IMG/VR virus record: IMGVR_UViG_3300045971_000344
Coordinates: 124,001 to 188,000 of that record
Reading direction: 5' to 3' (one strand)
Length of the DNA stretch: 64,000 bases
Positions 1 through 39,151 of this stretch are shown here, in pieces. Within the stretch, counting starts at the first letter, position 1; every line of letters starts with the position of its first letter. Made by a program: the position numbers and the translations under genes. The notes beneath the pieces are model-generated. The model was not told the DNA's origin. It saw only the letters and a list, made by a program, of their open reading frames with translations, and made no database searches.

Positions 1-335
1 TTGTCGTACTCAGCTACGTACTGTTTTCTTTGATCCTCATCAGCCTTATCCCAATCTGACTTGTTAAACAGGGTCTGACTATTTTTCTTAGTAGTAGTAC
101 CAGAATCTGAAGGGGAAGTAGATGGCTTAGACGCAGGTGTATCTGGCTTTTTAGGCGCTTCTGCAGGTTTAGTCGCCTCAGGTTTTTTAGGGGCCTCCGC
201 GGTCTTAGCAGTGGGCTTAATATTTTTCTTATGTTTAGGTGATTGTCCACCAGTCTTTTTGGATTGTCGTTTATTCGACAATTCGGTATTAAGGACATTT
301 CCTTTTATCTTAACAGCAGATAGATTCAATTTCAT
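1..335 (-). CDS. Partial CDS (3' end outside window); Lys/Pro/Ala-rich N-terminus, leader-family protein
   Basis: My translation from ATG at 335: MKLNLSAVKIKGNVLNTELSNKRQSKK...EAPKKPEATKPAEAPKKPD...DWDKADEDQRKQYVAEYD, open to the window edge. It starts 3 nt after the stop of 339..1265 and replaces the 14..298 call. Confidence 0.75.
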   Translation of the reverse strand, partial: MKLNLSAVKIKGNVLNTELSNKRQSKKTGGQSPKHKKNIKPTAKTAEAPKKPEATKPAEAPKKPDTPASKPSTSPSDSGTTTKKNSQTLFNKSDWDKADEDQRKQYVAEYD

Positions 336-338
336 AGA

Positions 339-1265
339 CTAATCCTTTAGCGACTCATATTTTTCTTTTAGAAATTCTAACACTGTAGAAGCGTCTCGTA
401 ACTTATGTCGGCGCATATTAGCGATAAAGTCATCCACAATCATTTTTTCTGCCTTAGACCCAGAACGAGAATTGTGTATATTGTTCTCTATAGAGATTTG
501 AATATCTCTTCTATCAGATCCGTAGTATAATCTTGACCTCAAATCATCTGCGTCTTCTGAAAGAACATCTCCACAGTTTTTCTTAAAAAGCTCATTTATT
601 AGGTCCACGTATCCTCTAGATGAAGTAAATCCTTTTGTTGCCTTGTTTTTGTTCTGCACCATATAAGCGTTGTAATCCTTATAGAAATAAATAGGGATAC
701 CATAGGCGGTTCCATATTCACCTATCTTTCTATACATCTTAGCAAAGTCATAATACTTATCGAATTCTTTGCTTGTCAATTCTCTCTTTTTGTCAATACT
801 TATAACTGCGTACTCACAAAGGTTTATGTGGACCTCAGTTATATACTTATTTAGGGGCTTTATAGTTGGTTCTGTAGAGTAAATGCGATCCTCATTCTCT
901 TGATACCTAAGTGGTGCCTCATCATCTGAAGATCCATTTCGGAATTCTCTACCCCAGTAATCTACGGATTCACCTGAGTATTTCTCTGCGAGCTTATGTC
1001 CGTTAATTACCAAGCAACAAGCCCAATCCGGACTTGCCTGTCGTGCGTATCCTCCAAACTTAACCCTAGACATAGACAAAAAGTAAGGTTTAAACTTCTT
1101 GGACTTATTTGTTCTATCTGAAGATGTACCTAGGTTATTGGTCAAGTGTATGTTATTGTCTTCCATTATATTTACAAGTTTATCCACAGTAGTATTATGG
1201 TACACGATAGGAGATATACCTGCCAGTTCTGTATTAGTGTTAACATGTACTTTATTTATCTTCAT
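339..1265 (-). CDS. Putative ADP-ribosyltransferase-fold protein with N-terminal leader
   Basis: VYHNT...NIMEDNNIHL, YFLSMSR and ENEDRI follow the H...S...ExE order of ART active-site strands. Leader is MKINKVHVNTNTELA. Confidence 0.5.
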   Translation of the reverse strand: MKINKVHVNTNTELAGISPIVYHNTTVDKLVNIMEDNNIHLTNNLGTSSDRTNKSKKFKPYFLSMSRVKFGGYARQASPDWACCLVINGHKLAEKYSGESVDYWGREFRNGSSDDEAPLRYQENEDRIYSTEPTIKPLNKYITEVHINLCEYAVISIDKKRELTSKEFDKYYDFAKMYRKIGEYGTAYGIPIYFYKDYNAYMVQNKNKATKGFTSSRGYVDLINELFKKNCGDVLSEDADDLRSRLYYGSDRRDIQISIENNIHNSRSGSKAEKMIVDDFIANMRRHKLRDASTVLEFLKEKYESLKD

Positions 1266-1531
1266 AAGTTATCCCTAAATTCCCTATCATTTTTGACCCA
1301 CCTGTCTACTTCCTCTTTAGTTACATCTGCAGGTTTGTGTTTACTACATCTAAAACAGAGTAGTTTCTTCCCTGCCTTTGCTTCAGCTTTTTTAACTTCC
1401 TCGTAGTGGTAACACTCTAAAACAACTATATAGAGCGTACCTTTTGGTACTAATTTACTTACTACGTGTATTATTTTTCTTTTTGGAGTGACTGTAGGTT
1501 TCTCATCTACAGCGATAACTGTCTTTCTCAT
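1262..1531 (-). CDS. Small leader-family protein, possible Zn ribbon
   Basis: Likely start MRKTVIA at 1531 after AAGGTGA. Contains LECYH...CFRC. Confidence 0.6.
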   Translation of the reverse strand: MRKTVIAVDEKPTVTPKRKIIHVVSKLVPKGTLYIVVLECYHYEEVKKAEAKAGKKLLCFRCSKHKPADVTKEEVDRWVKNDREFRDNL

Positions 1532-1532
1532 C

Positions 1533-1637
1533 TTAATCACCTTTATTTTTGTATCGGTCCAAACCCCAAGCTATAACTGCACAAATTGCTAGGGCTACAA
1601 GGACCACCCCTATCATTCCATTTTCTGAGAGTGTCAT
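1533..1637 (-). CDS. 34-aa single-pass membrane peptide (not in ORF track)
   Basis: MTLSENGMIGVVLVALAICAVIAWGLDRYKNKGD, preceded by strong SD AGGGAG; fills the gap exactly. Confidence 0.65.
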   Translation of the reverse strand: MTLSENGMIGVVLVALAICAVIAWGLDRYKNKGD

Positions 1638-1666
1638 AGTTGTTCTCCCTTATATAAATTATTGGC

Positions 1667-2161
1667 TTAGTCTAGATGTAATGGAGAGATGTCCTTTGCA
1701 TTTTTAAGGTCCTCTTCAGTAAGGTGCTTACGTTTTAGTCCGATTAAGAACTTGCCTAAACTTTGTTTAACCGGAGGAAGTATACCCACTATTTGGTCAG
1801 GGCTAACAGTACCTTCTTTCATGAGCCATCGACCTAAGCCGTTAGAAGACTCATGGTGTTTGTCTTGAACGTACTGACTTTTATCGTCTTTGAACTTAAT
1901 TATGGACAATACTGTATAGTCCTTTTCTTGATTTATGGCCCAACACGCCTTCATTACCCACGCTACCGCGTCTACCAAGTCTTCAAAGGCATAGACATAC
2001 CCCTTTTTACTCAAACGCCCACCAAATTGATTCTTTGTAAAACCCAGGCTACTCTTATTAGGTATTAATCCTGTTTTAAGTATCTTCTTAGCGTTCTTCG
2101 TATCCGTTACATGGTACAATACGCTGTCTTCTGATGATATTGTTATACGTTTGATCTTCAT
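1667..2161 (-). CDS. ADP-ribosyltransferase-fold protein (Tpt1/KptA- or DarT-like N-terminal motif)
   Basis: LYHVT...AKKILKTGLIP followed by GYVYAF. SD AGGAGGAG. Leader MKIKRITISS. Confidence 0.6.
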   Translation of the reverse strand: MKIKRITISSEDSVLYHVTDTKNAKKILKTGLIPNKSSLGFTKNQFGGRLSKKGYVYAFEDLVDAVAWVMKACWAINQEKDYTVLSIIKFKDDKSQYVQDKHHESSNGLGRWLMKEGTVSPDQIVGILPPVKQSLGKFLIGLKRKHLTEEDLKNAKDISPLHLD

Positions 2162-2205
2162 GAGTTACTCTCCTCCTACTATTTTCTAAAAGTACAAGAT
2201 AATCT

Positions 2206-2841
2206 TTATACAAGCTTTTTGAAATACTGCGCTACAATAGACGCACCAACTCTTGACTTTGTATAAGTATCACTAAGTATTTTCATAAAAATAACCTCGT
2301 CTGGAGAGATCCCTTTCATGCTCTCGCCCCTTTTCTTTCTTCTTTGTTCCTCTATAACCCAAGCCTCTGGGTACTTTTTAGCCGTAAACTTTTCGGCCCT
2401 TATATGTACAGTCTCGTATTTACTTTTTTCGTCCCATCGTGCGGCTGACCCATGAACTATGAACTCTGCTAGAGAAGCAAAGTGTTCATTCGGGTCTTTT
2501 AGGTGCTCTTGTTTGCAAAGATCTAGAAATAGCTTCTTGTCACTTTCACTTACTTTAGTCTTGCCCTTACGATGCCATAAGTGGTGTGCAAGTTCATGTG
2601 TTAATACTTGAACCATTCGTGTACTGTTCTTTACATCAGCCCCTATACATATTGTGTCTTTAGGTTTAAGCCAGTACTCGGATCCCTGTATATTGGAGCA
2701 ACAAATTGAAATAGGTTCAACTATGTTGACCTTTAAGCCTAACTTTGGTTCCAACTTGTTTAAGGCTCTTATTTTAGTTTCTGTTGGACTATAGTAACCA
2801 TCTCTTCTAAATAGACTTTGTATAAAGTTTACCTTGCTCAT
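2206..2841 (-). CDS. Zincin-like metallopeptidase (HExxH)
   Basis: VLTHELAHH with downstream PNEHFA glutamate. Confidence 0.65.
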   Translation of the reverse strand: MSKVNFIQSLFRRDGYYSPTETKIRALNKLEPKLGLKVNIVEPISICCSNIQGSEYWLKPKDTICIGADVKNSTRMVQVLTHELAHHLWHRKGKTKVSESDKKLFLDLCKQEHLKDPNEHFASLAEFIVHGSAARWDEKSKYETVHIRAEKFTAKKYPEAWVIEEQRRKKRGESMKGISPDEVIFMKILSDTYTKSRVGASIVAQYFKKLV

Positions 2842-2856
2842 TATTTACTCCAATAC

Positions 2857-4089
2857 TCATCCGTTATTATTATTCTTAAAAATATTTACAATCTTGTCGC
2901 TTAAGGGTATCTTCTTAGATGAAAGCATATTAAATATACTTGTATCGCCCCAAGTTGCAATAGCTTCAAGCATTTTTTCAGTCAGGTCAACTTTTTTCTG
3001 AAGTAAGAATCTTACAGAATCGTTAATATCCCCGATTATGCAGTTGATAATAACATCTTCTTCTGGAACAATTCCGTTATCTAAAAACGTCCACAAAATA
3101 TCAGGCTTGTACTTACTAGCTTCTAAGCGTAATGCGTGGCAAACAGGGATGTTATTCCTTATCAAGATCGCGATTGAACCTGGATCATTTTTTATGGCCG
3201 CGGCCTTTACTGCCTCACTAGGGATAATTCCTCTTTTAATAATATATTCTATGTCCCAACCCTTTTTCTTAACCTCAGCAAGTTGGACGCTCTCACTTGG
3301 GTTAGAGTGTACTTTTAGTAAACTCGAAGGGCCTGTGTAGTCCTTATTTAAGCACTCTCCTATTACAGTAAATGCCTGTCGCGTCAAAAATACCGCCTGA
3401 AGTGGCTCCGCGTTATGAATAATTCCTCTCTTAGATTTATCTGCAAACCCAGAGTATCCACACTGTCGCAATAGCCAATTCCACTTAGTAGCTTTGGAAA
3501 GAGCGTTTCCATTAGTTAAATCCGAAGCTAGCATCCTACTAAGGTTCCAAAAGATTGATGAAGGATTTTGCTCATGTGCAGAGCTTCTAGCACCTTTCAA
3601 CTTTTCAGCATACGCTTCCTCAAGTAGATTATAAGCATTATCCTTTACTTCTTTTTTAGTTTTACCTGTATAATCTATCTCATGCTCCATTTGTTTCCAA
3701 CACTCATCCATAAAAATCTTTTTTAACTTCTTAAAGTCCTTATCAAACTTATTGGATCCATACTCGGTATATAGATCATTAACAAATGATTGCTTGTCTT
3801 TTACTCTAACTACCCAAATATGTGGCTGAGTAGCAGCAAAAGGTAAACGGGTTAACGTCTTATGTATATCTATTCCATACTCTTCCCAACAGGCCTGAAG
3901 AGGGTAAGTATAAATTCCTACCGGAGTATTATATATCGACTTTGGGTTAATACCAAGCTTGTCAATTGCAGTAAAGCTAATATAAACATCTGGATCGTCT
4001 TTCCACTTAGACAAATATTCATAGGCACTAATCTTTTTGTTTACTTTAAGATTTACGCGTGCCGAGATCTCTACATTAGTTATTTTCAT
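2857..4089 (-). CDS. Paralog family A member (divergent ART-like core) with C-terminal helical repeats
   Basis: VYISFT..DKLGINPKSIYNTPVGIYTYPL...CGYSGFADK...IH.AEPLQAVFLT is shared with 4929..5978 and 10905..12038. C-terminal PSExVxxA repeats. Confidence 0.6.
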   Translation of the reverse strand: MKITNVEISARVNLKVNKKISAYEYLSKWKDDPDVYISFTAIDKLGINPKSIYNTPVGIYTYPLQACWEEYGIDIHKTLTRLPFAATQPHIWVVRVKDKQSFVNDLYTEYGSNKFDKDFKKLKKIFMDECWKQMEHEIDYTGKTKKEVKDNAYNLLEEAYAEKLKGARSSAHEQNPSSIFWNLSRMLASDLTNGNALSKATKWNWLLRQCGYSGFADKSKRGIIHNAEPLQAVFLTRQAFTVIGECLNKDYTGPSSLLKVHSNPSESVQLAEVKKKGWDIEYIIKRGIIPSEAVKAAAIKNDPGSIAILIRNNIPVCHALRLEASKYKPDILWTFLDNGIVPEEDVIINCIIGDINDSVRFLLQKKVDLTEKMLEAIATWGDTSIFNMLSSKKIPLSDKIVNIFKNNNNG

Positions 4090-4092
4090 AGC

Positions 4093-4932
4093 CTACGTTC
4101 TCCAATAAGTTACTTTCAATCTTTTAGCATTTTTTGCCCACCAGTTATGTGCAAGAACGTTTACCGTAGGTATCCAATATTTTTTATAATATTTTGGAGC
4201 CAGTACTTTTAGATTTTCAAGTTTATGAATTTCGTTCCAAATATAGGTCTCTATTTCATCAGTACCACTACCCATTAAGGCGTTTACTCCGGATAAGTTT
4301 TCTCCATAAGCTTTAAGATTCTCTGGACTAGTCGAGAATACCCAAGATATACTTTGTGGAGAACATACTATATTTAAAGGAAACTGATGTAAATAAATCA
4401 TATCCTTTCCGTGCAGGTAACTAAAGCTACAAGGGTCATAGCCCTTTTTTATCTTATTTGGATGATTATGTAAAGTAGCTAATCTAGTAGAGCCATATTT
4501 TTCTATGGTCTTAGCGGAAGCTGGGTCTAGACTTACGGATTTATTAGTCCCACTTGTTGCGTATGCTATAATCTTCCCTGTTTCTAAATCAAAAAAGTAG
4601 ACATGCTCTCTGGATTTATTTCGGATTTCTTCTACCTTAGCTAACACTGACGCTAGTAACTTTGGACTTAATTTCGCAGGGGTTGTCTTTATAGGTTTTG
4701 GAAGACCTTCTTCTATAGCTTTTGGCATTGTAGCATCTAACAATTTAACCGGCTTAGCATAGACCTCTTCAATTACGGTTTCAAAGACTCCATTAAAGGG
4801 TCCATTATTAGCTTTTAGCCACCTTTTAAGTTCAGCAGTAGCTTTTGCTTTATTTAAGCCCTGTTTTTTCCATTCAATTAATAATGGACGAATATCGGCT
4901 TTTGTTACTCTAGCTAATACTATCTTTCTCAT
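4093..4932 (-). CDS. JAB/MPN-like metalloprotease-domain protein with leader
   Basis: REHVYFFD...TLHNHP...SFSYLHGKD fits E...HxH(P)...S..D. True start is MRKIVLAR at 4932, overlapping the upstream stop (ATGA). Confidence 0.55.
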   Translation of the reverse strand: MRKIVLARVTKADIRPLLIEWKKQGLNKAKATAELKRWLKANNGPFNGVFETVIEEVYAKPVKLLDATMPKAIEEGLPKPIKTTPAKLSPKLLASVLAKVEEIRNKSREHVYFFDLETGKIIAYATSGTNKSVSLDPASAKTIEKYGSTRLATLHNHPNKIKKGYDPCSFSYLHGKDMIYLHQFPLNIVCSPQSISWVFSTSPENLKAYGENLSGVNALMGSGTDEIETYIWNEIHKLENLKVLAPKYYKKYWIPTVNVLAHNWWAKNAKRLKVTYWRT

Positions 4933-5978
4933 AACGTGCCCTTTTCTTTTAGGTCTACCAAGATTTCTTTCCAAAGACTTCCTGTTAATCCTTTAGACAC
5001 TAGCTTTTTAGACAGTATACTCAATTGTGAAACAGTTAATTGAGATAAAAATTTCTGTTTATTACCCACGAATTTTATACCAAAAGGCTGAGCCGAGGTT
5101 ACACCTAAAATATAGTGTAAAAGCATTTTTAGTGATCTACCTTTTTCGTACCCATCAAGATCAAGACACTCGTCTTCAGTCTTAAGGAGTTCTATTAGGT
5201 CGACTGGTGATTTAACTAGCTTTGGTGGGTCTTGGTGATTCGCTACATTTTTTATTTTAGTAATAACTGTAAAAGCCTTGGCTGTTAGGAATATTGCCTG
5301 AATAGGTTCACCTTCATGAATAAACGCTTTTCCACTTTTATCTGCGAAGCCATCGTACCCACAAAATCTCAATAAAGTATTCCATTTTGTTATTTTCTTT
5401 ATACCGCTGTCTTCACCGGTTAAAGCTTCGGCTAGGCTCTCAACAAAACTCCAAAAAGCAAACGCAATGGATTTATACTCTTTACTATAACGCTCGATTA
5501 AGTAATCATAATCTTCGTCTACGCTATCAAAAACCTTCTTTTCGTTCTTAATAGCTCTTAAGCAACTCAGTTTCTTTTCTTTACCATTCTCCTTTAATTC
5601 AAGGTAAAAAGATTTGAGCTTTTGAGCATCGGCTTTGAAGTTGTCTAATTTATAACTGGTCTTCATATCGTGAATAAAATTAGCACCAGGCCTTACTTTT
5701 ATTACCCAGATGTACGGACGGTCACCAGCATACGGAATTGCGCTTATGGTCCACGATTCTAATTCATTGTCTTGAAAGATTTGTTTTAAAGGATAAGCGT
5801 AGATACCTAGTGGGGTCTCATAGTCTGCCCGTGGATTAATCCCAATTTTATCTTCATAAGTAAAGCTAATATAGACATTTGGATCATTTTTATACTTCTT
5901 AAGTTCTTCATAAGGGTTTACCTTAGGATTGAGCTTTGGATTAGACCTAGAAGAAACTTCTACCCAGTGTATTCGCAT
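4929..5978 (-). CDS. Paralog family A member (divergent ART-like core)
   Basis: VYISFT, GINP, GIYAYPL, CGYDGFADK and EPIQAIFLT motifs. Leader MRIHWVEVSS. Confidence 0.6.
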   Translation of the reverse strand: MRIHWVEVSSRSNPKLNPKVNPYEELKKYKNDPNVYISFTYEDKIGINPRADYETPLGIYAYPLKQIFQDNELESWTISAIPYAGDRPYIWVIKVRPGANFIHDMKTSYKLDNFKADAQKLKSFYLELKENGKEKKLSCLRAIKNEKKVFDSVDEDYDYLIERYSKEYKSIAFAFWSFVESLAEALTGEDSGIKKITKWNTLLRFCGYDGFADKSGKAFIHEGEPIQAIFLTAKAFTVITKIKNVANHQDPPKLVKSPVDLIELLKTEDECLDLDGYEKGRSLKMLLHYILGVTSAQPFGIKFVGNKQKFLSQLTVSQLSILSKKLVSKGLTGSLWKEILVDLKEKGTL

Positions 5979-5986
5979 ATACTCTC

Positions 5987-6793
5987 CTACTTAGTATATT
6001 TTAACAAATGAGTTAACGCTTTATTTGGATCTTTAAAAACCTTCCCATCTTCTGAAATAGAGTAATCAACTATGTTTTTAGGTGTAACAACCTGTGGCTT
6101 ATTTTTAATAAGTATTTCGTGTTCATTACCCCAGCGCATCCCGTTAGCCATAAAGCTATCAAAGTCCTTCTCGTCTAAGTAATGCCTAAACAGGTCTTCA
6201 ATGTTTAAAAGAACATCAGGACCTTTAAGTTTCTCTTTAAGTATTATCGCAGATTCATTACGGTTCCTAGGTTGCCACCCAGCAAACTTTCTTGCTATAT
6301 ACTGTTCAGGACTCCAACTAGCCAGTTTACAATCTCTAAGAGAAAGAGATCCTTTTTCTAATAAAGATTTAAGAACTTCGTCTTTTAAAACTATACCTCT
6401 ATAACAGGTTTTAGGCGGAGCAGATCTAAAGATAGCTGGAGGGTTTATATTCATAATAAGGTCCACTAACTCTGGGTTATCATTTTTACCAAAGTCAGAC
6501 CATAGAATTGCCGCGTGTAAACATTTAACCTCTTCTTTAGTTGGGTCTGGTAGGACCAAAAATCGCCAAAACTGAGCATCAGCACAATAATCGGCCAACT
6601 TTTGGACTTCTTTGTCTGTCTTTACTTTTTGCTTTGATGAAGACAGTCCTAGTCTGTGCCAAGTTCCTGCCTTTGGTCCACGTACATAAAATCCGGTATC
6701 TCCGTAGCCACACGCTGAAAAGAAAAAATTTATTTTAGTCGTGTCTACTGCTTGAGATTTCTTTTTGACCGCGGCAATAACAATCTTTCTCAT
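5987..6793 (-). CDS. R-S-E clade ADP-ribosyltransferase (VIP2/Alt/Mod-like motif order)
   Basis: CYRG...ASWS...IARKFA...NEHEILI. Leader MRKIVIAA. Confidence 0.7.
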   Translation of the reverse strand: MRKIVIAAVKKKSQAVDTTKINFFFSACGYGDTGFYVRGPKAGTWHRLGLSSSKQKVKTDKEVQKLADYCADAQFWRFLVLPDPTKEEVKCLHAAILWSDFGKNDNPELVDLIMNINPPAIFRSAPPKTCYRGIVLKDEVLKSLLEKGSLSLRDCKLASWSPEQYIARKFAGWQPRNRNESAIILKEKLKGPDVLLNIEDLFRHYLDEKDFDSFMANGMRWGNEHEILIKNKPQVVTPKNIVDYSISEDGKVFKDPNKALTHLLKYTK

Positions 6794-6799
6794 AGCTTA

Positions 6800-7462
6800 C
6801 TACTCCACATGAGGTAGATACCGCAACTGCTGGTAACGACCTTTATTTTGTTTTATGAAATTCTCTGCCTTGACCTTACTAATATTGCGCTTAGTAGTAT
6901 ACCAATCTCCACAGTCATAATACTGGACGTCAAAAGTAGATACTACCTTTATGTAAAACATAGCGCTATAGGACCTATGTGTCCGCCCGTCTTTTGTCTT
7001 CCACGTCCAGATTGGATAGGACCCATCATAAAATCCATCATGTCCTAAGAAAACAACCTTCTCATATTTTCGGTAATCAATACTCGACCTAACATAGACC
7101 TTATCCATTCTAGTTAGGTCCTTAGGATTTGTAGCAATATATTCCTTAGTAGGCTTATAAATCAAATTATGGTCAAACTCTATAAACTTTACATTAGGCT
7201 CATCATAGTAAAAATCTTCAGCATCGGTTCCTTCAAGATCTGTTGTTACTGCCTCGCCTTCACACGGACCAACGCCTACTCCTGTCTGTCCATCGCATTT
7301 TACTATATAGAAATTCAGGTCCTCAAGAGATTCTGCAAAGGTATACTCCGCCTTAAGTAATTTCTTTCTCAGGTCTTCTACGATATGCTTATCTACATCT
7401 TGATACCGTACGTGCTTACATACGATCTTTGACTTAGCTTTAGCTATAATGATCTTTCTCAT
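6800..7462 (-). CDS. Hypothetical leader-family protein
   Basis: 220-aa ORF starting MRKIIIAK; no domain recognised. Confidence 0.6.
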   Translation of the reverse strand: MRKIIIAKAKSKIVCKHVRYQDVDKHIVEDLRKKLLKAEYTFAESLEDLNFYIVKCDGQTGVGVGPCEGEAVTTDLEGTDAEDFYYDEPNVKFIEFDHNLIYKPTKEYIATNPKDLTRMDKVYVRSSIDYRKYEKVVFLGHDGFYDGSYPIWTWKTKDGRTHRSYSAMFYIKVVSTFDVQYYDCGDWYTTKRNISKVKAENFIKQNKGRYQQLRYLPHVE

Positions 7463-8055
7463 ATAATAACCCCTATAGCTTGCTTATACCAGTTTTTAAA
7501 TGTAGTATTCTCTAACAGGTCCAAACAACCCAGTGTAAGTAACTGTGGATAAAATTCATGCTTATGAGTTAGTGCATAATGCTCCTCAGAGGACATCTTT
7601 CCTAGTATAGGCGTAAACCACTGCTTAATTTGATAATGGCTAAGTTGTAAAAAATAATTATTAGAGTAAAAACACTTAAGCCATTCTTCATTCTGAGCGA
7701 GCGGTGAGTCTAACAAAGAATGTAGAAGCTTGTACTCTTTTGAGATCTCATTATCTATGTGGTCATTAAATTTACTATGCAAGAACTCATGCACTATAAC
7801 TAATGCAGGTGTCCAAGGTTTATCCTCAAAAACTTCTATGTTTATAATAATTTGACTTCCTGTCCACTCTCCTTGTGAAGCTCCTAGGTCTTTATACTTT
7901 TTTAGGCAAAAGTTCTTTGAAGAAATTATGTTCTTTATTACGGCCGAAAGTTTCGGATCTTTAATCAGGCCAGGTATTTTAGTAAAAGTTTCTTGTGCTA
8001 AATTAAGGTATTTTTCTCTAATTGCTTCAGGTAAATACCCTACTTTTATCTTCAT
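7459..8055 (-). CDS. Zincin-like metallopeptidase (HExxH)
   Basis: VIVHEFLH plus downstream HEFY; ATGA overlaps on both sides. Confidence 0.6.
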   Translation of the reverse strand: MKIKVGYLPEAIREKYLNLAQETFTKIPGLIKDPKLSAVIKNIISSKNFCLKKYKDLGASQGEWTGSQIIINIEVFEDKPWTPALVIVHEFLHSKFNDHIDNEISKEYKLLHSLLDSPLAQNEEWLKCFYSNNYFLQLSHYQIKQWFTPILGKMSSEEHYALTHKHEFYPQLLTLGCLDLLENTTFKNWYKQAIGVII

Positions 8056-10298
8056 AAGCCAAGTTCCTTTACATACTTAGAGAGGTCTTGCTTTGCCTTG
8101 AATTTAGTTCTTTCCTCTACGGCTGGTCCGTGTGATCCATTAATTCTCTCAACTAAATAAGCATGATGTAGTACGTATTGAATATTTGGATTAGTCAATC
8201 CAATTTCTTGTGTCTGAAATTGCTTAGTAAATGTCCAAGAGCAATCTTCATCTGTATCAGTTTCCCCAGATACCTTAGATAGTGCCTTTCCACTTATAAG
8301 AATATCACCATGAAAAATTATGCCAATATCAGCTTTACGTCCAAAAGATTCTCCTACGTACTGCAAACTCTTATCTATATTAGGAGCTATATAAAGAACA
8401 TCTCCCATAGAGCGACCTGTCTTTTTTGTGCCTCGAAGTTTGAATCCTGACAATAATATAGCCCCTGCGGCTGATACTGCGGTCCCATGAAAACCGTCTT
8501 TAATGACTTTAACTTCAGGGTTTTTTAAGTTATTTCGTAAATAGTTTTCTATTTTTTCAGATCGCTTTATTGTCCATAGTTTCTTTACCTTAAAAGATAC
8601 CCCATGAACGTTCGCCATGAAGGCTTCTAACTTCTGTTCCACTTCATGCGTGTCCTCAACAGCTTGTTCTACCTTTACTTGTTCTTCTCTCTTTATAGTA
8701 AAATACTTTTCAAAGATCTCATCTTCGTTACGCTTTCTGACATTCCACTTCTTAACAATACTTAAAGAGATCCTAGGAATCTCTTCATCAGGTAATGCCA
8801 TTTTAAGATGCTTTTCTTTTACTTCCCCAAAGGGAGAATCATAGGTTAATCTAAATTTTGTTGCCAGTAACGCAGACAATACCGTCTGTTTTACAATCAA
8901 AGAATCCTTTAGGCCACTAAAAGTATATTTAAATAAGTCGTCTATATCTAAGGTCTTAAGGAGCTTTATAACAAGAACATCGTCTAGTCGGACAAATTGG
9001 TCTTCGGTTAGGACTAATTTCTTTAAGTACGCTTGTAGTGATGACCCTGACATACTTGTTATAGCCGTAACTGGGTCGGACTGTTCAACAACCTCCGAAC
9101 TATCTTTATCTATTGCCTTATAGATACTTTTTATTCTAGTTATATCTGTAGTTGATAAATAAGGTATCATCCAAGACTTGGGAGAAAATAGCTTGAAATC
9201 AATTTGCTTTTTATACTGTAGCGCGCGCTCTATGGCTTGTTCAAAAGGATTTGACTTTATTCCATAACTTTTTGCATAGTCATCCGCATTTATTCTAAGG
9301 CTAGGTATTTTCTTAATTGACCTAGCGGAGGTTACAAACCAAGACATAGTCTTATCAAACATAAGGGCGCAGAATATCGCAAGGTCTTTATCTCCGCCCA
9401 CATCTGAAGAAAACTCTGAAAAATGTAAGATAGGGTACAAATAAAATTCGGCCTTTAGCGTGCTATCTAAATTGCTTTTTATCCTTTCATCATAAACTCT
9501 ACTTTGACCATATTTTTTCTTACTCTCGTTAAGCCTATTCTCATAATCCTTGGTTTCTAAAAAAGCCTTTCTTTTATCTAGTAAATATTTGTTCATAAAT
9601 TTTATTATTACATCTTTTACTAAAGTCTTATCTAATTTGTTTGCCTTAAGAGCGACCAAGTCTAAGTCTTTTAGACCCATTGTCTTGGACGAACCTACAT
9701 TTAACTTTACTCCCCTGACTTCTATGTCTTCTTTACTGTCCACATGAAATTTTCTAAAAATAGGAACAACAACCTTTGTCTTTAACTTAGCCTTTGGACC
9801 AAGCATTAAGTATGCAGTAACATCGTGCTTAACATCTTCGGGGGCTTTCAAGAAGGCTTTTGTAAGCTCAGGGAAAAACTTAATAAGGTATTCTGAAATG
9901 CTATAGATACAAAAAATTAAGAAATTAGTGTTCTCATTTATAACCTTAGGATTTACACCCAGGTCTTTTAGACTTTGCTTTACAAGCACGTGGTTATCTT
10001 TAAACGTGTTCTCTATTAAAGAAACTCCGTCACCCTTCTTAAAACTCTTTTTACCTATGATAGAAAGTAATCGCGACCCTGCAAACTTGGTTTCATTCTT
10101 TCGAACCATGGGATGCCCGTTTAGAATAGGCACAAATTTCTTTCCGTCAAGATCAATATATAAGCTCTTTAGATAGCTATGAACCAAAACAACAGGAATA
10201 GAGTGTCCAATCAATCTTTCATTTTTCCAATACTCAATACCTTTTATTTGGTCAAATTGATTGATCTTAGCAGCCAGTGTGTATTTTCTATTAAGCAT
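8052..10298 (-). CDS. Large protein with C-terminal PARP-like (H-Y-E) catalytic domain
   Basis: GFHGT...AILLSGFKL...GRSMGDVLYIAPNIDKSLQY...QEIGL resembles the PARP signature HG[ST]..I...G....G.M.G.G.Y.A....KS..Y...E. Confidence 0.7.
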   Translation of the reverse strand: MLNRKYTLAAKINQFDQIKGIEYWKNERLIGHSIPVVLVHSYLKSLYIDLDGKKFVPILNGHPMVRKNETKFAGSRLLSIIGKKSFKKGDGVSLIENTFKDNHVLVKQSLKDLGVNPKVINENTNFLIFCIYSISEYLIKFFPELTKAFLKAPEDVKHDVTAYLMLGPKAKLKTKVVVPIFRKFHVDSKEDIEVRGVKLNVGSSKTMGLKDLDLVALKANKLDKTLVKDVIIKFMNKYLLDKRKAFLETKDYENRLNESKKKYGQSRVYDERIKSNLDSTLKAEFYLYPILHFSEFSSDVGGDKDLAIFCALMFDKTMSWFVTSARSIKKIPSLRINADDYAKSYGIKSNPFEQAIERALQYKKQIDFKLFSPKSWMIPYLSTTDITRIKSIYKAIDKDSSEVVEQSDPVTAITSMSGSSLQAYLKKLVLTEDQFVRLDDVLVIKLLKTLDIDDLFKYTFSGLKDSLIVKQTVLSALLATKFRLTYDSPFGEVKEKHLKMALPDEEIPRISLSIVKKWNVRKRNEDEIFEKYFTIKREEQVKVEQAVEDTHEVEQKLEAFMANVHGVSFKVKKLWTIKRSEKIENYLRNNLKNPEVKVIKDGFHGTAVSAAGAILLSGFKLRGTKKTGRSMGDVLYIAPNIDKSLQYVGESFGRKADIGIIFHGDILISGKALSKVSGETDTDEDCSWTFTKQFQTQEIGLTNPNIQYVLHHAYLVERINGSHGPAVEERTKFKAKQDLSKYVKELGL

Positions 10299-10316
10299 AA
10301 ACCTTACTCCTTAACA

Positions 10317-10888
10317 CTATCTAAGTTCTTTTTTAGGATCCAATTTGTCTACAGCTATAACCTTTAGTATTTTTGGATCATAGACAATGCAGTGCATATC
10401 TCCCGAATAATCTTCAATAACTAAGGAATCATATCCTAAAGATAAAATAAGCTTTAACCATTCTTTTGCTTCAGTGTTCTTAAATAGATTTTCCCAGACG
10501 TAGCTAAATGCCCAAGCAAGTTCACCCGACCCCATAAGATTTTCTGTGTAAGAAACTCTGGTATGATTAATCGACTTTAGCCTACGGTCTAAATTTGGAA
10601 CTGCATCTAGTAGGAGATCTACAACTTTTTTGGAAACATCTCCAGAGATTTGTTTCTTAGAAGAAATCTTAACAGAGATAACTATCCCCACCTTATTGGA
10701 ATAGTGATTAACCGCATAGGACTTTGCACCATCTAAAGCATCAGTAAAATAAAGTCCAGGTCCATGTTCCATCCAATTTTTTCATCTAGAGAGTAACTAA
10801 TATCAAATTTATCTGAGGTAGTCATTCTACCCTGATACCATATTTTTGTTGCGGAGCTACTAATACTCGAAAGTACAACCTTTCTCAT
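10317..10888 (-). pseudogene. ART-like gene (polyvalent-protein type) split by a 1-nt frameshift in an A6 run
   Basis: ATG at 10888 after SD GAGG gives MRKVVLSS...IWYQGR...KFDISYSLDEK. One extra A at 10777-10782 joins it to NWMEHGPGLYFT...AKSYA...LGYDSLVI...IVYDP (track ORF 10317..10772). Confidence 0.7.
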
Positions 10889-10904
10889 ACTAACCTCGTC
10901 TAAT

Positions 10905-12038
10905 TTAATTGTATGCGCTTTTGCCTGTCTTTGCCCAACAAGCTAGTATAGCCCTATCCATTCGTTTCCACCATTGTCTATCTTTTAGATCTGATCCCGC
11001 GGATACTTGTTTTTGGGCACAGTGAGTGATAAGCATCTGTAAACAATTTTTATTAGCCGATTTCCAGAGCTCTGGAGGAGTATTCTTTACTACAAGACCA
11101 GGTATCTTACTAATAGGTATAGATTGATTCTCAGCCGAGACCAACCACTGCAACAGAGCTTTATCATACTCATATTCTTCGTTATCATAACGCTGGTCAA
11201 CTGTTCCAAGAGCTCTAACAAAGTCAATCATATCCGAGATAGGTAAACGCTTATCAGTATTTTTATACGTCTTATTATAGCATTCACCTATTACGGTGAA
11301 CGCATCTTTTGTTAAGAATACAGCCTGTATAGGTTCAGATGGATGGATTATACCCTTTCCTGTCTTATCTGCAAAACCCGTATAGCCACATTTACGGAGC
11401 AACCAGTTCCATTTAACCGCGCCATTCGTATGTATGCTCTCATCAAATAGTGTAAGCTCCCCCGCTAACAGTCTACTAAGATTCCAAAAACTACTACATG
11501 GATTTTTAATCCTAGCGGTAGTAATTGCCTCAAAAAATAGATATTTCCATTTTGCATTAACATTTTTAGTAAAGATAGTTTTCCAATCACGTATGGCTTT
11601 AGGTGAAGCGCCCCTAAATTTTTCAAGTTGTTTTGCTTTTTCTTTTACCCAATGACCCATGTATATTTGTTCAAGTATTACGGCATCCTTATCAAACTTA
11701 TCTGAACCATAGTCGGTGTGCATGTCTTCAATGAAGGTCTTACCGGTCTTTGCACGGACAACCCAGATATGAGGTGCGTTACCCGCAAAGGGTATTCCTT
11801 CTAAACTTTGATCTCGTCCTATGTTATATTCAAACCAAGCAGTTTTTAACGGATAAGTATAGATACCGATAGGGGTATTGTATTTTGATTGAGGATTTAT
11901 TCCTACTTTATCAATGTGGGTAAAACTAATATAGACATCCGGGTCATCTTTCCACTTCTTAAGGTAGTCATAAGCACTAACCTTTGGATTTAGCTTAGAG
12001 TTTGACCGCGTAGCCAAGACCACTTCTTTAACTTTCAT
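10905..12038 (-). CDS. Paralog family A member (divergent ART-like core)
   Basis: Same motifs as 2857..4089. Leader MKVKEVVLAT. Confidence 0.6.
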   Translation of the reverse strand: MKVKEVVLATRSNSKLNPKVSAYDYLKKWKDDPDVYISFTHIDKVGINPQSKYNTPIGIYTYPLKTAWFEYNIGRDQSLEGIPFAGNAPHIWVVRAKTGKTFIEDMHTDYGSDKFDKDAVILEQIYMGHWVKEKAKQLEKFRGASPKAIRDWKTIFTKNVNAKWKYLFFEAITTARIKNPCSSFWNLSRLLAGELTLFDESIHTNGAVKWNWLLRKCGYTGFADKTGKGIIHPSEPIQAVFLTKDAFTVIGECYNKTYKNTDKRLPISDMIDFVRALGTVDQRYDNEEYEYDKALLQWLVSAENQSIPISKIPGLVVKNTPPELWKSANKNCLQMLITHCAQKQVSAGSDLKDRQWWKRMDRAILACWAKTGKSAYN

Positions 12039-12040
12039 TT

Positions 12041-12466
12041 TTACTCTCCAAAAGTCTCTGCCCAGTCACCTTCAATATCAGAATCGTAGTAATCTATATC
12101 TGAAATATCAAATTTTGATAACCAAGCGTTACTTCGTAAGTATTCTGCTACCTTTGGGTTGTGATGCCATTTCCCTCTTTTAGTAACATCCGTTACAGAC
12201 AATACTAGTTCTCTGCTACCTGCAAAGTAAAGAACTAATCCTACTGCATCTTTTAACTTAAAATGTTCCCAGACGCGATAATGAAGAAGAGACTCAGGGA
12301 AAACATAGACTGTATTTTTGTCTACGACCATTGCTCTACAAACCCTAGATCTATCACAACATTCTTTAACCTCTTTTTTATCTGGGTTTACAAAAACGTC
12401 TTTATAGTCATTGCTAAATCTAGTAGACACTTGGTCAACGAACTTTGCCAGTACGACCTTTCTCAT
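12041..12466 (-). CDS. Hypothetical leader-family protein
   Basis: Starts MRKVVLAK; SD GAGG. Confidence 0.65.
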   Translation of the reverse strand: MRKVVLAKFVDQVSTRFSNDYKDVFVNPDKKEVKECCDRSRVCRAMVVDKNTVYVFPESLLHYRVWEHFKLKDAVGLVLYFAGSRELVLSVTDVTKRGKWHHNPKVAEYLRSNAWLSKFDISDIDYYDSDIEGDWAETFGE

Positions 12467-12475
12467 AAATAACCT

Positions 12476-12541
12476 CTAGCTTTTTGGCTTCTTAGGCTGC
12501 TTTGGTTTCTTTACTTCTTTACGAATATCTTTATTTCCCAT
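12476..12541 (-). CDS. 21-aa highly basic peptide (not in ORF track)
   Basis: MGNKDIRKEVKKPKQPKKPKS; SD AAGAGG upstream; fills the intergenic gap. Confidence 0.5.
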   Translation of the reverse strand: MGNKDIRKEVKKPKQPKKPKS

Positions 12542-12564
12542 GATGGTTTCCTCTTTTATTTATA

Positions 12565-12849
12565 TTAGGTTTGACTAAACCAGTCTTTAGTTATAAAAAG
12601 ATTTATCCTGCTCCTCATTCCTTTTTCAATATCTTTTTTATAGTTCTCATAAACCTCAGGATATTTTTCTTCGTAGCCACTTTGAGCATACATCTTTTCT
12701 ATTTCATTTGGATTCTTTATTGCTTTTGCTTTAAATAAATCAGTTATCTTAACATGGCGCCCTTGAGTTAGGGCCAAATATTTAGCACCTAAATCTACTT
12801 GGCTAGAAGTCAATCCAGATTTATCTTTTGCTATAACGACTTTTCTCAT
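12565..12849 (-). CDS. Hypothetical leader-family protein
   Basis: True start MRKVVIAK at 12849, ATGA overlap with the upstream stop. Confidence 0.6.
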   Translation of the reverse strand: MRKVVIAKDKSGLTSSQVDLGAKYLALTQGRHVKITDLFKAKAIKNPNEIEKMYAQSGYEEKYPEVYENYKKDIEKGMRSRINLFITKDWFSQT

Positions 12850-13217
12850 TTCCAAGCCTCTCTTGTATCAGGGTCACGGTTATTAAAGTTCTGACTGTTT
12901 ATATCAAACCACTCATCTTTAGTGATCTTATACCGTTCATGTATCTTTAGGTTTATAATCAGGTACCACCCGTATTCGTACGCCAATTTTTCCCTAGCGT
13001 TTCGACTCAAACTAGTGTTTTGTTTGTGCTCACAATAGGACATCCAATGTCCGAGCTCATGGGAAAGAATAATCATTTTCTTTCGCGTTGTCTGAACACT
13101 GTCTAAATAAATAGTCTTTGACTGATAATCACAGCGGCCTAGAACAGATAGCGGCTTTTGCTCTATTTGTATTCCGAGGCCGTGTGCTATATGGATTAAT
13201 TCCTCTAGTCCATTCAT
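12846..13217 (-). CDS. ImmA/IrrE-like HExxH metallopeptidase
   Basis: LGIQIE...GRC...IYLD...ILSHELGHW...REKLAYEYG. Likely start MNGLEE after AAAGGA. Confidence 0.7.
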   Translation of the reverse strand: MNGLEELIHIAHGLGIQIEQKPLSVLGRCDYQSKTIYLDSVQTTRKKMIILSHELGHWMSYCEHKQNTSLSRNAREKLAYEYGWYLIINLKIHERYKITKDEWFDINSQNFNNRDPDTREAWK

Positions 13218-13231
13218 GGTAAATCCTTTGG

Positions 13232-14236
13232 TCAACAATTAAGTTCAGCTTCTTTAAAGACCTTTTCAAGTTTGTTCGCAAAGTCAACATACTTCTTTCT
13301 ATACACTTTAGCACTAGGATTGGCCTTAGTGGTCTTAACGTCCTTTACATCTGGTGCTATTGCTTTCTGTAACTTGGTTATAAACGCCAAAGCTAAGTCA
13401 TAAAATTCTTTATACTCAGCATTACTCAGCTCTTTTTCTATTTTTGATCTTTGGGCATCAATTTTCTTTTGTGCTTTCTTAACAAATACATAGTAATAGT
13501 CGCGTATAAATTCCCCGTTATCAGCCGTTTCTTCTTCACCTAGATAGTTACGCTCGTCTATCTCAAATTTCAGATCATACTTATGGAGCGCGCAAACCAT
13601 ATCCTTTAGGTTATACCGTGCTACCTTTTGTATCTGTTCTTCAGATAGGGGCTCATCATGAGTATTCGCAGTAATAACGTCTGTCTTTTTACTAAAAGCT
13701 CCATCATTACCTGTAGCGGACTTTATTTGTTTTGGATCAAAGACATGAAAATTCAAGGCGTTCATATCAAATTTATTTTGGGTTATTATACCATCAAAAC
13801 CCAATGCCTTTAGTTCTTTATGGAAGGGCTCAATATAACCCCAATGCCCTTCTCTAATTCCGCTTAAAGTGTCTTCGTTATTGAACTTACCTAGTTTGGA
13901 CGATAATTTTTGGACGTGCTTTTCGATTCTAAAATCAAAAGGTTTTTGTATACTTAGATAGACTGGCAGTACGCTCCCGTTTGCCCGGTCAGCAAAGCCA
14001 TTGGCTAAGGAAGGCGTAGATGTAAAGGAAAACAATCCTCGGTTACGCGTGTCCCTAAACGTTCCGAAGTCCGCGGCTGTACCATGATACATAACAAGCG
14101 GGGACCCATGTTTGTCAACTGCTTTGGAGCGACCAAACCAAATCCAGAAGTTATCCACGCCTTTAGGGTCAGCGTTAATAGCGTTACCTTTGGAATTCAT
14201 GTTCGTCTTAAAACTCGCGATAACTACATGTCTCAT
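13232..14236 (-). CDS. ADP-ribosyltransferase-like protein of the polyvalent-protein type plus helical C-terminal domain
   Basis: FWIWFGRSKAVD..G.PLVMYHGT..F..F...LFSFTS...A..FA...PVYLSIQKPFD...GFDGII...VFDPKQIKSATGNDGAFS. Leader MRHVVIAS. Confidence 0.75.
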   Translation of the reverse strand: MRHVVIASFKTNMNSKGNAINADPKGVDNFWIWFGRSKAVDKHGSPLVMYHGTAADFGTFRDTRNRGLFSFTSTPSLANGFADRANGSVLPVYLSIQKPFDFRIEKHVQKLSSKLGKFNNEDTLSGIREGHWGYIEPFHKELKALGFDGIITQNKFDMNALNFHVFDPKQIKSATGNDGAFSKKTDVITANTHDEPLSEEQIQKVARYNLKDMVCALHKYDLKFEIDERNYLGEEETADNGEFIRDYYYVFVKKAQKKIDAQRSKIEKELSNAEYKEFYDLALAFITKLQKAIAPDVKDVKTTKANPSAKVYRKKYVDFANKLEKVFKEAELNC

Positions 14237-16656
14237 AGTAATCCCTTAGATTTAAGGAGCGCCAGTACCTCATTTGGACCAATGACTTTTACGCCCAATG
14301 ACTGAGCCTTTACCATTTTAGATGAGCCACTTCCAGGGTCTTTTGCTACCAAATAGGTCAGACCTGCCTTTACTGCTGACCAGACTTGACCACCGTTTGC
14401 CTCAATGACTGCCTCTGCATCATGCTGGCGAACACCCGTCCAGACAAAAGACACTCCGTCTAACTTAGAGCTCTTTCGTTCTTTCTTTTGGACGGCTTTT
14501 ATGTGGACCCTTCCGGCGTTGCGCTTCAAGAAGGCTTTGAAGGGCTTTATACCTTGTGCAAACTGTTTACCTGTATCAAGAGAGAACCCAGAGATCTGAG
14601 AAATTTGTTGCGCGACCTCACCTACAGTGAAACCCGCCCAATCAAACATTTCTTCTCCACGTACTTCATAAATCTTTCTCAAGCGGGTACCCGCAATTAT
14701 CTCTCCAAAGAAAGGCGTGGCTGAAGCCAGCGTAGGTAACTCAATACCATTCAAGGCCGTTATTATTCCGTTATAAATTTTCTCTGCATTACGCTTCTGG
14801 ATTCCATCAATAGACATCAACTCTGGAATTGAGGTATTAATCAGCTTATCAATAGTGTCAATACCTGCATGATAGAATCGCTCAATTAAGCCCCTACCTA
14901 AGTAATCTACCCCAATTTTAGAAAAGAAGCTTGCCATTTGCTTGATCTTTACGGTTTCGTCTTCACTTGCATTGACCAATACCAAATCAACTTCGGTTTC
15001 ATTCCATGCGTATTCTCCAAATACTTTCTTATCAGGCATCTGGGCCTTATTGGCCTTCACTAAGGTCTTCAAGATGTGAGGAATTACATCACCGCTCCTT
15101 GTAAGTAAAACTTTCGCGCCTGGTCCAAGCTTGTTGTCGTAAACAAATGCCGCGTTAAAGGCAGTGGCGAACGTTACGGTTACACCACTTAACTTTACTG
15201 GACTGATCTTTATTCGAGGTTTTAACTTACCATGCTTAGATACTGCCCAGACAACCTCTTGGACATGTGCTTCAACAGCTTCGGTTTCACCGGTCTTAAA
15301 GGCCTTGGCGTAATCGGGTTTAATCGTATTACTAGCGTTACCCATTGCAACTCTGATCTTACAGCTATTTGCTTCGATTACCGCTCCATCTAGTTCAAAA
15401 CCCCCAACCTTCTTTCTTTCGTTTATATAAGAAGTAAGATGATCTTCATTCACCTCAGTGGATTTTAAAACAGAATAGTGAACAACGTGGAGTCCACTTT
15501 CTTTTATAAGTTCAAGTTGCTCTTTCTTATCCAAACGGTCCTCATGACTCATTATGGAATAGGCTATTACATTTATCTTACTCAAGACCTTTACGTTGGG
15601 CTCATTACGGTTTATCATTCCCGCCAAAAGGTTTCTACCGTTTGCGTATTCTTTATCCCCGTAGGCCTTAACGGACTCAAAGTCAGCCTGGGACAGAATT
15701 CCTTCGGCCCTAAAGGTATATTCACCCTTGAACTTCGCACCTATCTTCTTTGGAACTGTAGGAACGTTCTTTATGTGTCTCGTAACGTCTTGACCAATTG
15801 ATCCGTCACCCCTTGTGGTCGCCCTAACAAAGGTCCCGTCTACATACTTAAGGGACAGGCTTAATCCATCTAATTTATCGGACAGTACGTAGAACTTATC
15901 TTTTGTTTCCTTAACAAACTTTGCGGTTGCTACTCCATCGGGCTTTATCTTATTTAACGACCCCATGTCATAATCTAGCTGTACTTTTGACCTTATGTTT
16001 TTTGCAACGGGCGCACCAACCGCGTCAAGAATTGCCGCTCGTTTAGAGTCCAGGGTCTTCAAAAATTCTACAAGGTCATCATATTGGTTATCTGTTATCT
16101 CACTTTCTTTAGAACCAGTATGGTACGCATCTTTAGATGCAAGAGCTAACCCGAATAACCAGGCTACTATATCTTCTTTACCCGCGGTAGCATAGTGTGC
16201 AAAGTCATGGATAAGTTTAGGTGTAGTTAGAACCAGTGCATTTGGTTGCGCCTTTACATCTGCGGACTGGAGTCTAGGTAAATTCCAAAGGAGTGTTCTA
16301 ACCTCAGACATATTTAGAGATTTAGCTGTAAATGTTCTAAAATTTTGAGGGTGTAAATTAGCTGACTTCATTGTACGTTTATCAATGTCGCGCTTAACCA
16401 AAAGCTTTTCAAAGTCAACAGGCGCCAAATATATAGCATACTCGTCTTGAATCCAATATGCGATGATCTGAGGATTCAGGCTAAGAACTACCAGGTAAAA
16501 CTTTTTGACCTTGCCATTAGTCGTAACTACTCCTCGAAGCCTACTTCCTATTTTAAGTTCAAAGCCTGCTACCCTGATATAGTCTTTTTGGTGTTCCTTC
16601 CAGTATTTATCAGCATTTAGGAACAAATCTTTTTTATAATGCTTAAGTAACTGCAT
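14233..16656 (-). CDS. ligA: NAD+-dependent DNA ligase with N-terminal extension and C-terminal BRCT
   Basis: Domain Ia YH...ITDNQYD, MGSLNK, adenylation motif SDKLDGLS, TRGDG..GQDVT, LDGAVI, AFK, OB fold RSGDVIPHI, HhH repeats, BRCT (FVWTG...GG...YLVA...SSKMVKA..LGVKVI). Confidence 0.95.
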   Translation of the reverse strand: MQLLKHYKKDLFLNADKYWKEHQKDYIRVAGFELKIGSRLRGVVTTNGKVKKFYLVVLSLNPQIIAYWIQDEYAIYLAPVDFEKLLVKRDIDKRTMKSANLHPQNFRTFTAKSLNMSEVRTLLWNLPRLQSADVKAQPNALVLTTPKLIHDFAHYATAGKEDIVAWLFGLALASKDAYHTGSKESEITDNQYDDLVEFLKTLDSKRAAILDAVGAPVAKNIRSKVQLDYDMGSLNKIKPDGVATAKFVKETKDKFYVLSDKLDGLSLSLKYVDGTFVRATTRGDGSIGQDVTRHIKNVPTVPKKIGAKFKGEYTFRAEGILSQADFESVKAYGDKEYANGRNLLAGMINRNEPNVKVLSKINVIAYSIMSHEDRLDKKEQLELIKESGLHVVHYSVLKSTEVNEDHLTSYINERKKVGGFELDGAVIEANSCKIRVAMGNASNTIKPDYAKAFKTGETEAVEAHVQEVVWAVSKHGKLKPRIKISPVKLSGVTVTFATAFNAAFVYDNKLGPGAKVLLTRSGDVIPHILKTLVKANKAQMPDKKVFGEYAWNETEVDLVLVNASEDETVKIKQMASFFSKIGVDYLGRGLIERFYHAGIDTIDKLINTSIPELMSIDGIQKRNAEKIYNGIITALNGIELPTLASATPFFGEIIAGTRLRKIYEVRGEEMFDWAGFTVGEVAQQISQISGFSLDTGKQFAQGIKPFKAFLKRNAGRVHIKAVQKKERKSSKLDGVSFVWTGVRQHDAEAVIEANGGQVWSAVKAGLTYLVAKDPGSGSSKMVKAQSLGVKVIGPNEVLALLKSKGLL

Positions 16657-23909: not shown

Positions 23910-23935
23910 CTCTATTTAGTTATAGAATTAACAGG

Positions 23936-24298: not shown

Positions 24299-24316
24299 AC
24301 TTTCTCCTATTTTGGA

Positions 24317-39117: not shown

Positions 39118-39151
39118 GCTACCCTCACTTAGCCTAAATATTATTGTACTA

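Follow-up and report, generated by a model that had tools for sequence, protein, structure and literature searches.

Why would some fifteen proteins encoded side by side by one phage, most of them unrelated, begin with nearly the same few residues? This question is raised by a 64,000-nucleotide stretch (positions 124,001 to 188,000) of the IMG/VR virus record IMGVR_UViG_3300045971_000344, which we call the window. It is a section of the 293,540-bp metagenomic contig Ga0485187_0000007 (JGI 3300045970) of an uncultured jumbo phage (294 kb), and a near-identical contig of 294,944 bp is present in IMG/VR. Within its first genes, a module at window 1-14236, about 15 proteins carry an N-terminal leader of 7-15 residues, typically MRKVVIA, with a basic start, three or four beta-branched or hydrophobic residues and Ala or Ser as the last residue. 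We consider this leader to be, probably, a lineage-specific capsid-targeting or propeptide tag with an Ala/Ser junction and a functional equivalent of the capsid targeting sequence (CTS) of phage T4.

All 15 N-termini listed in the original prediction begin at the minus-strand starts that it had assigned to them. A strict motif, M-[RK]-[KHN]-[VIT]-[VIT]-[ILV]-[AS], matched 8 of the 19 module genes and none of the 38 other genes of the window (Fisher p = 4.6e-5), in agreement with the claim that the tail, lysis and ligase genes lack the leader. A looser motif was found in 15/19 module genes and in 1/38 others (p = 2.6e-9), the sole match outside the module being a signal-peptide-like protein. 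Stripped of its Met, the strict motif becomes a hexapeptide, [RK][KHN][VIT][VIT][ILV][AS], of which the translated window (20,812 residues) has eight copies. All eight start at residue 2 of module proteins (0.001 expected at N-termini by chance), and the six-frame translation of the 64 kb has no other. No match to the strict motif was found in approximately 0.95 Mb of control loci (PaBG, T4, a T4-like phage and 37 PaBG-like terminase regions). The proposed confinement of the motif to the module therefore holds for its strict form within the window; it does not extend to the head genes of this phage, where two small neighbouring proteins carry the motif and the major capsid protein (MCP) has a motif-like N-terminus. 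The leader is also, as had been argued, too short for a Sec signal, as it has only three or four hydrophobic residues and is often seven residues long in its entirety. A Sec or lipoprotein signal peptide, with its hydrophobic core of about 7-15 residues before a signal-peptidase site, does not fit the leaders.

Gene calling supports the leader starts and also explains how such a motif may be missed. Independent Joint Genome Institute (JGI) gene calls place the start at the leader ATG in 12 of 13 genes. For the ART-PolyVal protein starting at 14236, the public annotation begins at an internal ATG at 14200 (322 aa) and loses the leader, so automatic annotation can hide the motif. The mechanical list of open reading frames (ORFs) proposes other starts further upstream, at GTG or TTG codons at 1540, 4974 and 12855. 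One member said to be hidden by a frameshift is real: at an A6 run (10775-10783), 10733-10888 continues into 10317-10772 through a shift to the -1 frame. In place of a 20-residue variant at 335, the leader there is probably the seven-residue MKLNLSA.

A shared N-terminus might be a remnant of ancestry, retained by diverged paralogues that have kept nothing else. The tagged proteins had been described as unrelated, which is mostly correct but fails for g4089, g5978 and g12038, paralogues over about 300 aa and the only set linked by BLASTP among the module proteins. These three true paralogues, and an N-terminal motif that g2161 has in common with the g1265 family, are in line with common descent. 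However, the remaining members are dissimilar beyond the leader and have different Pfam domains, and the same families bear other leaders elsewhere. We regard ancestry as the least credible of the explanations considered here.

The pattern could also arise at the nucleotide level, from an ATG AGA AAG start cassette, ATGA overlaps or a recombination joint, with the peptide itself functionless. Codons 1-3 are nearly invariant (ATG AGA AAG): the Arg codon at residue 2 is AGA in 8/8 cases (starts 1531, 4932, 6793, 7462, 10888, 12466, 12849 and 14236) against a usage of 40% (p = 6e-4), the leader Lys codon is AAG in 6/7, and ATG overlaps the upstream stop as ATGA at 4/8 strict-motif starts. The uniformity of AGA and AAG suggests either that the segment coding for the leader spread recently or that initiation favours these codons. 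Yet the residues are kept while codons 4-7 vary, with positions 1-2 conserved and position 3 free, as originally noted. The DNA upstream of the leader genes is not conserved, and relatives encode the same peptide with different codons (CGG, CGA, AAA), the DNA pattern being limited to the window phage. The leader is missing from tail, lysis and ligase genes whose starts overlap in a similar way. Given the free third positions, the unconserved upstream DNA and the recoding in relatives, selection acts on the peptide, and a purely nucleotide-level origin is highly improbable.

The most telling evidence comes from homologues of the module proteins in other phages. In three unrelated families (RRNP-YISFT, the YHxT family of g1265, and ART-PolyVal), homology begins exactly after the leader. 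At this very boundary, homologues in other phages have another leader, in most cases of the T4 type ending in hydrophobic-x-Glu (E-type). For the RRNP family, taken as the 230 listed homologues of g12038 with E <= 0.001, the junction residue was scored in 100 members. The conserved mature start is [AS]-R-R-N-P...Y-I-S-F-T. Leaders of the window type (MRKVILA, MRKTTIA, MRKVSIA, MRNVIIA) abut it in the closest relatives of g12038, and in most other homologues the leader is stereotyped, spans about 10 residues and ends in hydrophobic-x-Glu. The residue before the mature start was Glu in 87/100 and Ala or Ser in 10/100. The g1265 family comprises 1,219 cluster representatives with the mature start G-[ILV]-S-P-[IV]-[LV]-Y-H-x-T; among the best 150 of these, 107 junctions were scored, and the preceding residue was Glu in 77 and Ala or Ser in 21. 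In both families the modal leader is 9-10 aa long and a hydrophobic residue stands two positions before the junction residue in about 85-90%. The junction residue is thus nearly binary, Glu or Ala/Ser.

Individual alignments show the same boundary. BLASTP aligns g1265 from its residue 17 with residue 12 onwards of a T4-like phage protein of 335 aa, directly past both leaders. Homologues of the ART-PolyVal protein were too dispersed for statistics on the junction; two of them, a protein in L112 and the protein P0133, have E-type leaders before the conserved start that in the window comes after MRHVVIA. In the T4 record itself, ipII and ipIII open with the same 10-residue pattern ending in I-A-E, and ipI is similar. 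A tblastn search of the RRNP family against cultured phages gave no match.

The leader is predicted to lie outside the folded part of these proteins. AlphaFold (AF2) models of g12038 (predicted local distance difference test, pLDDT, 89) and g1265 (pLDDT 88.6) show low-confidence coil at residues 1-21 and 1-19, respectively, and in these models the leader is a disordered appendage outside the fold. A role of the leader as the first strand of a Rossmann-like fold was ruled out by the same coil prediction. A fold search with the RRNP model gave weak matches, of which the best in the PDB, a pre-ejectosome chain of cyanophage A4 (E = 2.4e-3, TM 0.28), was not relied on.

The class of leader follows the genome, as a survey of 79 loci around RRNP-family genes (1,354 non-redundant ORFs) showed; this class test replaced an ungapped N-terminal identity test, which was too blunt. 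At least two E-type leaders were present in 24 loci and at least two leaders ending in Ala or Ser (A/S-type) in 2 loci, while no locus of the 79 had both classes. Background loci contained 23 E-type leaders and one A/S-type leader among 831 ORFs. The class also extends to unrelated neighbours. In a T4-like locus of E-type (L010), an unrelated protein has the same leader as two RRNP-family members, and A/S-type leaders occur on unrelated neighbouring genes in L009, a close relative of the window phage (MCP 88% identical), and in L012, which has at least eight leader genes. Between orthologues, the letters of the leader differ and its pattern is kept.

The same comparison turned up larger arrays. 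The uncultured phage contigs L088, L063, L074 and L116 each have 6-12 adjacent genes, all with a T4-type CTS-like leader, far exceeding the three internal-protein genes in the T4 stretch examined. In another lineage, L073, four RRNP-family paralogues start with M-K-Y-[TV]-K-x-[SP]-[VL]-x-[SG] before A-R-[KR]-N; read from their sequences, these leaders are a further class with a Ser/Gly junction.

These patterns closely resemble the T4 system. In T4, propeptides of 10-19 residues are CTSs, gp21 cleaves after Glu, and the CTS is experimentally sufficient for packaging, with residues 4 and 7 used in targeting and residues 8 and 10 in processing (PMC9026906, PMC5694885). Like the CTS of IPI-III and Alt, the leader is a short N-terminal peptide placed outside the fold of otherwise unrelated proteins of one phage: 15 genes share a 7-15-aa peptide with a fixed junction. 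Homologous cargo families meet both leaders at the identical junction, ADP-ribosyltransferases (ARTs) are among the cargo in both, and the genes lie in arrays. The T4 sequence differs in being aromatic-rich and ending in (L/I)-x-Glu, whereas the leaders of the window are basic and beta-branched and end in [ILV]-[AS]; the gp21 site is absent from their ends, and the Glu junction is found on homologues in other phages. The scale also differs, with about 15-17 tagged genes in one 14-kb module.

A mechanism of the T4 kind may be proposed, whose steps of capsid targeting, cleavage by a protease and ejection we infer. Tagged enzymes made late would attach to the core of the prohead by way of their basic and hydrophobic leader, and the prohead protease would then cut at the Ala/Ser junction, the exact bond being uncertain by one residue (after, or one before, the Ala/Ser). 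The mature enzymes would be ejected with the DNA and would ADP-ribosylate or otherwise modify host targets. The cargo would thus be host-modifying enzymes, namely ARTs, a PARP-like enzyme and several families without an assigned function. The leaderless zincins of the module might stay in the cytoplasm or take part in processing. The original prediction of a portable tag for capsid targeting and processing on injected effectors is supported by comparison, through four independent results (the junctions, the genome-specific class, the disorder and the polyvalent type of cargo), and its packaging and cleavage steps would follow by analogy.

The nature of the cargo is consistent with injection. 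The module has a repertoire of the polyvalent type (ART-PolyVal, PARP, HExxH zincins and the g1265 domain), and polyvalent proteins have been argued to be packaged and injected (Iyer et al. 2017; PMC5512222). The g1265 domain, a suspected candidate for an H-Y-E ART fold, also occurs within proteins of 1,376-2,566 aa alongside ART-PolyVal, NUDIX and GNAT domains. Unlike polyvalent proteins, which combine their domains in one giant polypeptide, the module has them on separate genes (89-944 aa), each with its own leader. Because the g1265 domain sits in giant polyvalent-type proteins, the module can be viewed as a polyvalent repertoire unbundled into individually tagged genes.

The three zincins provide the main alternative. 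The module has three independent leaderless genes (2206-2841, 7459-8055 and 12846-13217), and these are exactly its three HExxH zincins, a coincidence with a chance of about 1 in 816. The leader might then be a propeptide or recognition tag for these proteases, serving pro-enzyme control or the maturation of toxic enzymes, with no role at the capsid. A leaderless orthologue travels with the module in L009, and zincin 'MPTase' domains have been proposed to process polyvalent proteins (PMC5512222). On the other hand, L012, with its leader genes, has no HExxH ORF within 21 kb, and a disordered peptide of seven residues is unlikely to inhibit many different folds. Nor would dependence on zincins explain why homologues have, at this junction, leaders of the type that targets proteins to the T4 capsid. 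We find this alternative unlikely.

A further possibility is an N-terminal degradation or turnover tag, read by an unfoldase such as ClpXP, that limits the lifetime of toxic enzymes. One N-terminal class of ClpX recognition signals in E. coli consists of Met, a basic residue and three hydrophobic residues, which the leader resembles, and the ARTs in the cargo could harm the producing cell. However, no feature of the data calls for a turnover tag. A binary junction residue followed by a conserved mature start fits cleavage and not processive degradation, and the alternative class of leader is a proven packaging signal in T4. Turnover is thus a very unlikely function.

The motif also occurs at the head genes. 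Just upstream of them, two small proteins carry it (MKIKAVTIA and MKIIKFVIVA); in the close relative, the orthologous proteins have other letters but the same pattern before a conserved mature start. The MCP was compared across the loci L001 6429-7523, L130, L133, L006, L127 and L128. In the lineage of the window phage, its N-terminus has a basic stretch followed by F-T-L-A|S-G, whereas the MCPs of PaBG, Sen-NF and Alexandra have Lys or Arg at the Ala position (L-K|D-G or T-L-R|[DN]-G). This likeness, from the sequences of a single lineage, is suggestive but was given little weight. A ferritin-like protein also lies beside the head genes (L001 3060-3602; Pfam E = 2e-16, domain from residue 32); its N-terminal extension ends in L-N-V-L-T-A|S-G, and it may be a packaged cargo of the Dps/ferritin type.

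Several points weigh against a capsid-targeting tag. PaBG, the nearest cultured relative, has no shared leader in 150 kb of annotated genes, so the leader is not a general trait of the PaBG group. The literature searched describes no Ala/Ser specificity for a gp21-type protease, only Glu-directed sites. The E-type leaders on metagenomic homologues are putative CTSs, identified as such by similarity alone. The match in the MCP may be a coincidence, as maturation removes about 20% of the mass of the PaBG MCP (PMC7412058). Some minor constraint on initiation or coupling coexists with selection on the peptide, given that ATG AGA AAG is uniform beyond codon usage and that half of the starts overlap the upstream stop. 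Finally, no prohead protease or scaffold was found in roughly 104 kb of phage sequence. In the search for portal, protease and scaffold genes, an upstream walk met giant fibre-like genes only; terminase-based locus searches and a portal protein search did not recover the contig of the window phage, and PHROG and Pfam scans of the PaBG genes between portal and MCP gave no protease. The jumbo-phage group to which the window phage belongs does have a gp21-type protease according to Iyer et al. (PMC7824862).

Other packaging systems offer partial parallels. The jumbo phages phiKZ, 201phi2-1 and SPN3US likewise package many proteins, a gp21-type protease removes their N-terminal propeptides, and conserved N-termini on diverged paralogues have been interpreted as targeting signals (PMC5694885). 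Most of these propeptides, however, exceed 100 residues, and their cleavage follows A/S/G-x-Glu; the leader has 7-15 residues and no obligatory Glu. The P1 protein DarB, an anti-defence effector, has an N-terminal signal of under 30 residues that by itself brings a reporter into the capsid (PMC9024508); in contrast to the module, this concerns one protein, with no many-gene consensus and no common cleavage junction known. Encapsulin cargo-loading peptides are also short, disordered terminal peptides that bring diverse cargo into a shell of HK97 fold, and the ferritin-like protein with its motif-like N-terminus beside the head genes adds to the likeness. Encapsulin tags, however, usually sit at the C-terminus and stay on the cargo, and their shells involve neither DNA nor ejection.

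The concept of an N-terminal packaging label is therefore already known from T4, P1 DarB and the propeptides of the phiKZ type. New here are a label class without Glu, its scale (15-17 genes), the relabelling of shared cargo across lineages and the unbundled polyvalent repertoire. To our knowledge, experiments have demonstrated tags for capsid targeting only in T4 and, for a single protein, in P1. We give even chances to the broader idea that phages possess two or more interchangeable capsid 'address label' systems, the T4 label cut after Glu and an undescribed Ala/Ser (sometimes Gly) class, between which cargo families are re-labelled from one lineage to another. If this is true, some prohead proteases or scaffolds would have a novel specificity, and a portable tag of seven residues would be available for protein delivery by jumbo phages other than T4-like ones. 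A second, very short tag class, which is shared here by about 15 genes and occurs in several uncultured lineages, would establish N-terminal labels as a general and modular means by which large phages load effectors, would supply a rule by which injected proteins can be predicted from genome sequence alone and, if real, would serve as a compact handle for packaging foreign proteins. The comparison also flags the two very large, uncharacterised RRNP and g1265 cargo families as probable injected proteins.

All window genes lie on the minus strand, and the module can be followed from its upstream boundary, which is conserved, at a leaderless NAD-dependent DNA ligase (14233-16656). The first module gene, g14236 (13232-14236, 334 aa), is an ART-PolyVal ADP-ribosyltransferase (domain at residues 41-181, E = 1.9e-25) with the leader MRHVVIA. 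It is followed by g13217 (12846-13217, 123 aa), a leaderless zincin with HELGH at residue 53 that is weakly DUF6782-like and whose orthologue in L009 is likewise leaderless. The next two genes, g12849 (12565-12849, 94 aa; MRKVVIA) and g12466 (12041-12466, 141 aa; MRKVVLA), precede g12038 (10905-12038, 377 aa; MKVKEVVLA) of the RRNP-YISFT family. The frameshifted gene (10317-10888) consists of a 51-aa piece with the leader MRKVVLS and a 151-aa ART-PolyVal-like piece in the -1 frame. The two pieces were searched separately, and the Pfam match to ART-PolyVal was weak; the identical split is called in two independent assemblies (L003 and L004), and it could reflect a pseudogene, a homopolymer error or programmed slippage.

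Further along, g10298 (8052-10298, 748 aa; MLNRKYTLA) has a PARP catalytic domain at residues 548-654 (PF00644, E = 5e-9), and g8055 (7459-8055, 198 aa) is a leaderless zincin with HEFLH at residue 89. Then come g7462 (6800-7462, 220 aa; MRKIIIA), g6793 (5987-6793, 268 aa; MRKIVIA) and two RRNP-YISFT paralogues, g5978 (4929-5978, 349 aa; MRIHWVEVS) and g4089 (2857-4089, 410 aa; MKITNVEIS), on either side of g4932 (4093-4932, 279 aa; MRKIVLA), which has an ATGA overlap with the upstream stop. The last of the leaderless zincins, g2841 (2206-2841, 211 aa), has HELAH at residue 82 and is weakly M78/IrrE-like. In g2161 (1667-2161, 164 aa; MKIKRITIS), the N-terminal YHxT start resembles the g1265 family (hhalign probability 90.5%), and a weak match to an RNA 2'-phosphotransferase (E = 0.0075) fell below the cut-off. 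The small g1531 (1262-1531, 89 aa; MRKTVIA) is followed by g1265 itself (339-1265, 308 aa), with the leader MKINKVHVNTNTELA and the mature start G-I-S-P-I-V-Y-H. For most module proteins, PHROGs, Pfam and NCBIfam gave no assignment.

The last module gene runs off the start of the window, where positions 1-335 hold the 5' portion of a 944-aa protein. In L009 its orthologue has 583 aa (E = 7e-19), begins with MKLTIAA and aligns from residue 1. The full 944-aa protein (L004 10931-13765) has a very basic, Pro/Lys/Ala-rich N-terminal region of low complexity, and a hydrophobic segment conserved between it and the orthologue is reminiscent of membrane-active ejection proteins. Downstream of this gene, the module ends in a strong hairpin and a strand switch. 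The hairpin (L004 13772-13806) is GC-rich, with 14 bp, lies between the convergent module end and genes of the opposite strand and is probably a bidirectional terminator. A scan for promoters and terminators within the module gave no signal above shuffles.

The module terminates a co-directional block of structural and lysis genes, arranged as head, sheath, tube, baseplate and fibres, lysis, NAD-dependent ligase and leader module. The synteny from the ligase through the module to a strand switch before a LigD_N gene is also found in L009 and in the contig of P0008, which has an ART-PolyVal gene as well. The major head protein is approximately 46% identical to those of jumbo myophages of the PaBG, Lu11 and Erwinia Alexandra types; the phage that hosts the leader system is PaBG-like and not T4-like. 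At the DNA level the module has no cultured relative, a search against cultured phages giving zero matches. Elsewhere in the window, two large tail-fibre-like paralogues (35053-43372; 1,354 and 1,406 aa) are 36% identical, and further paralogues of this kind lie at 22005-26806 and 46786-52487 (631 and 829 aa; 425, 833 and 621 aa).

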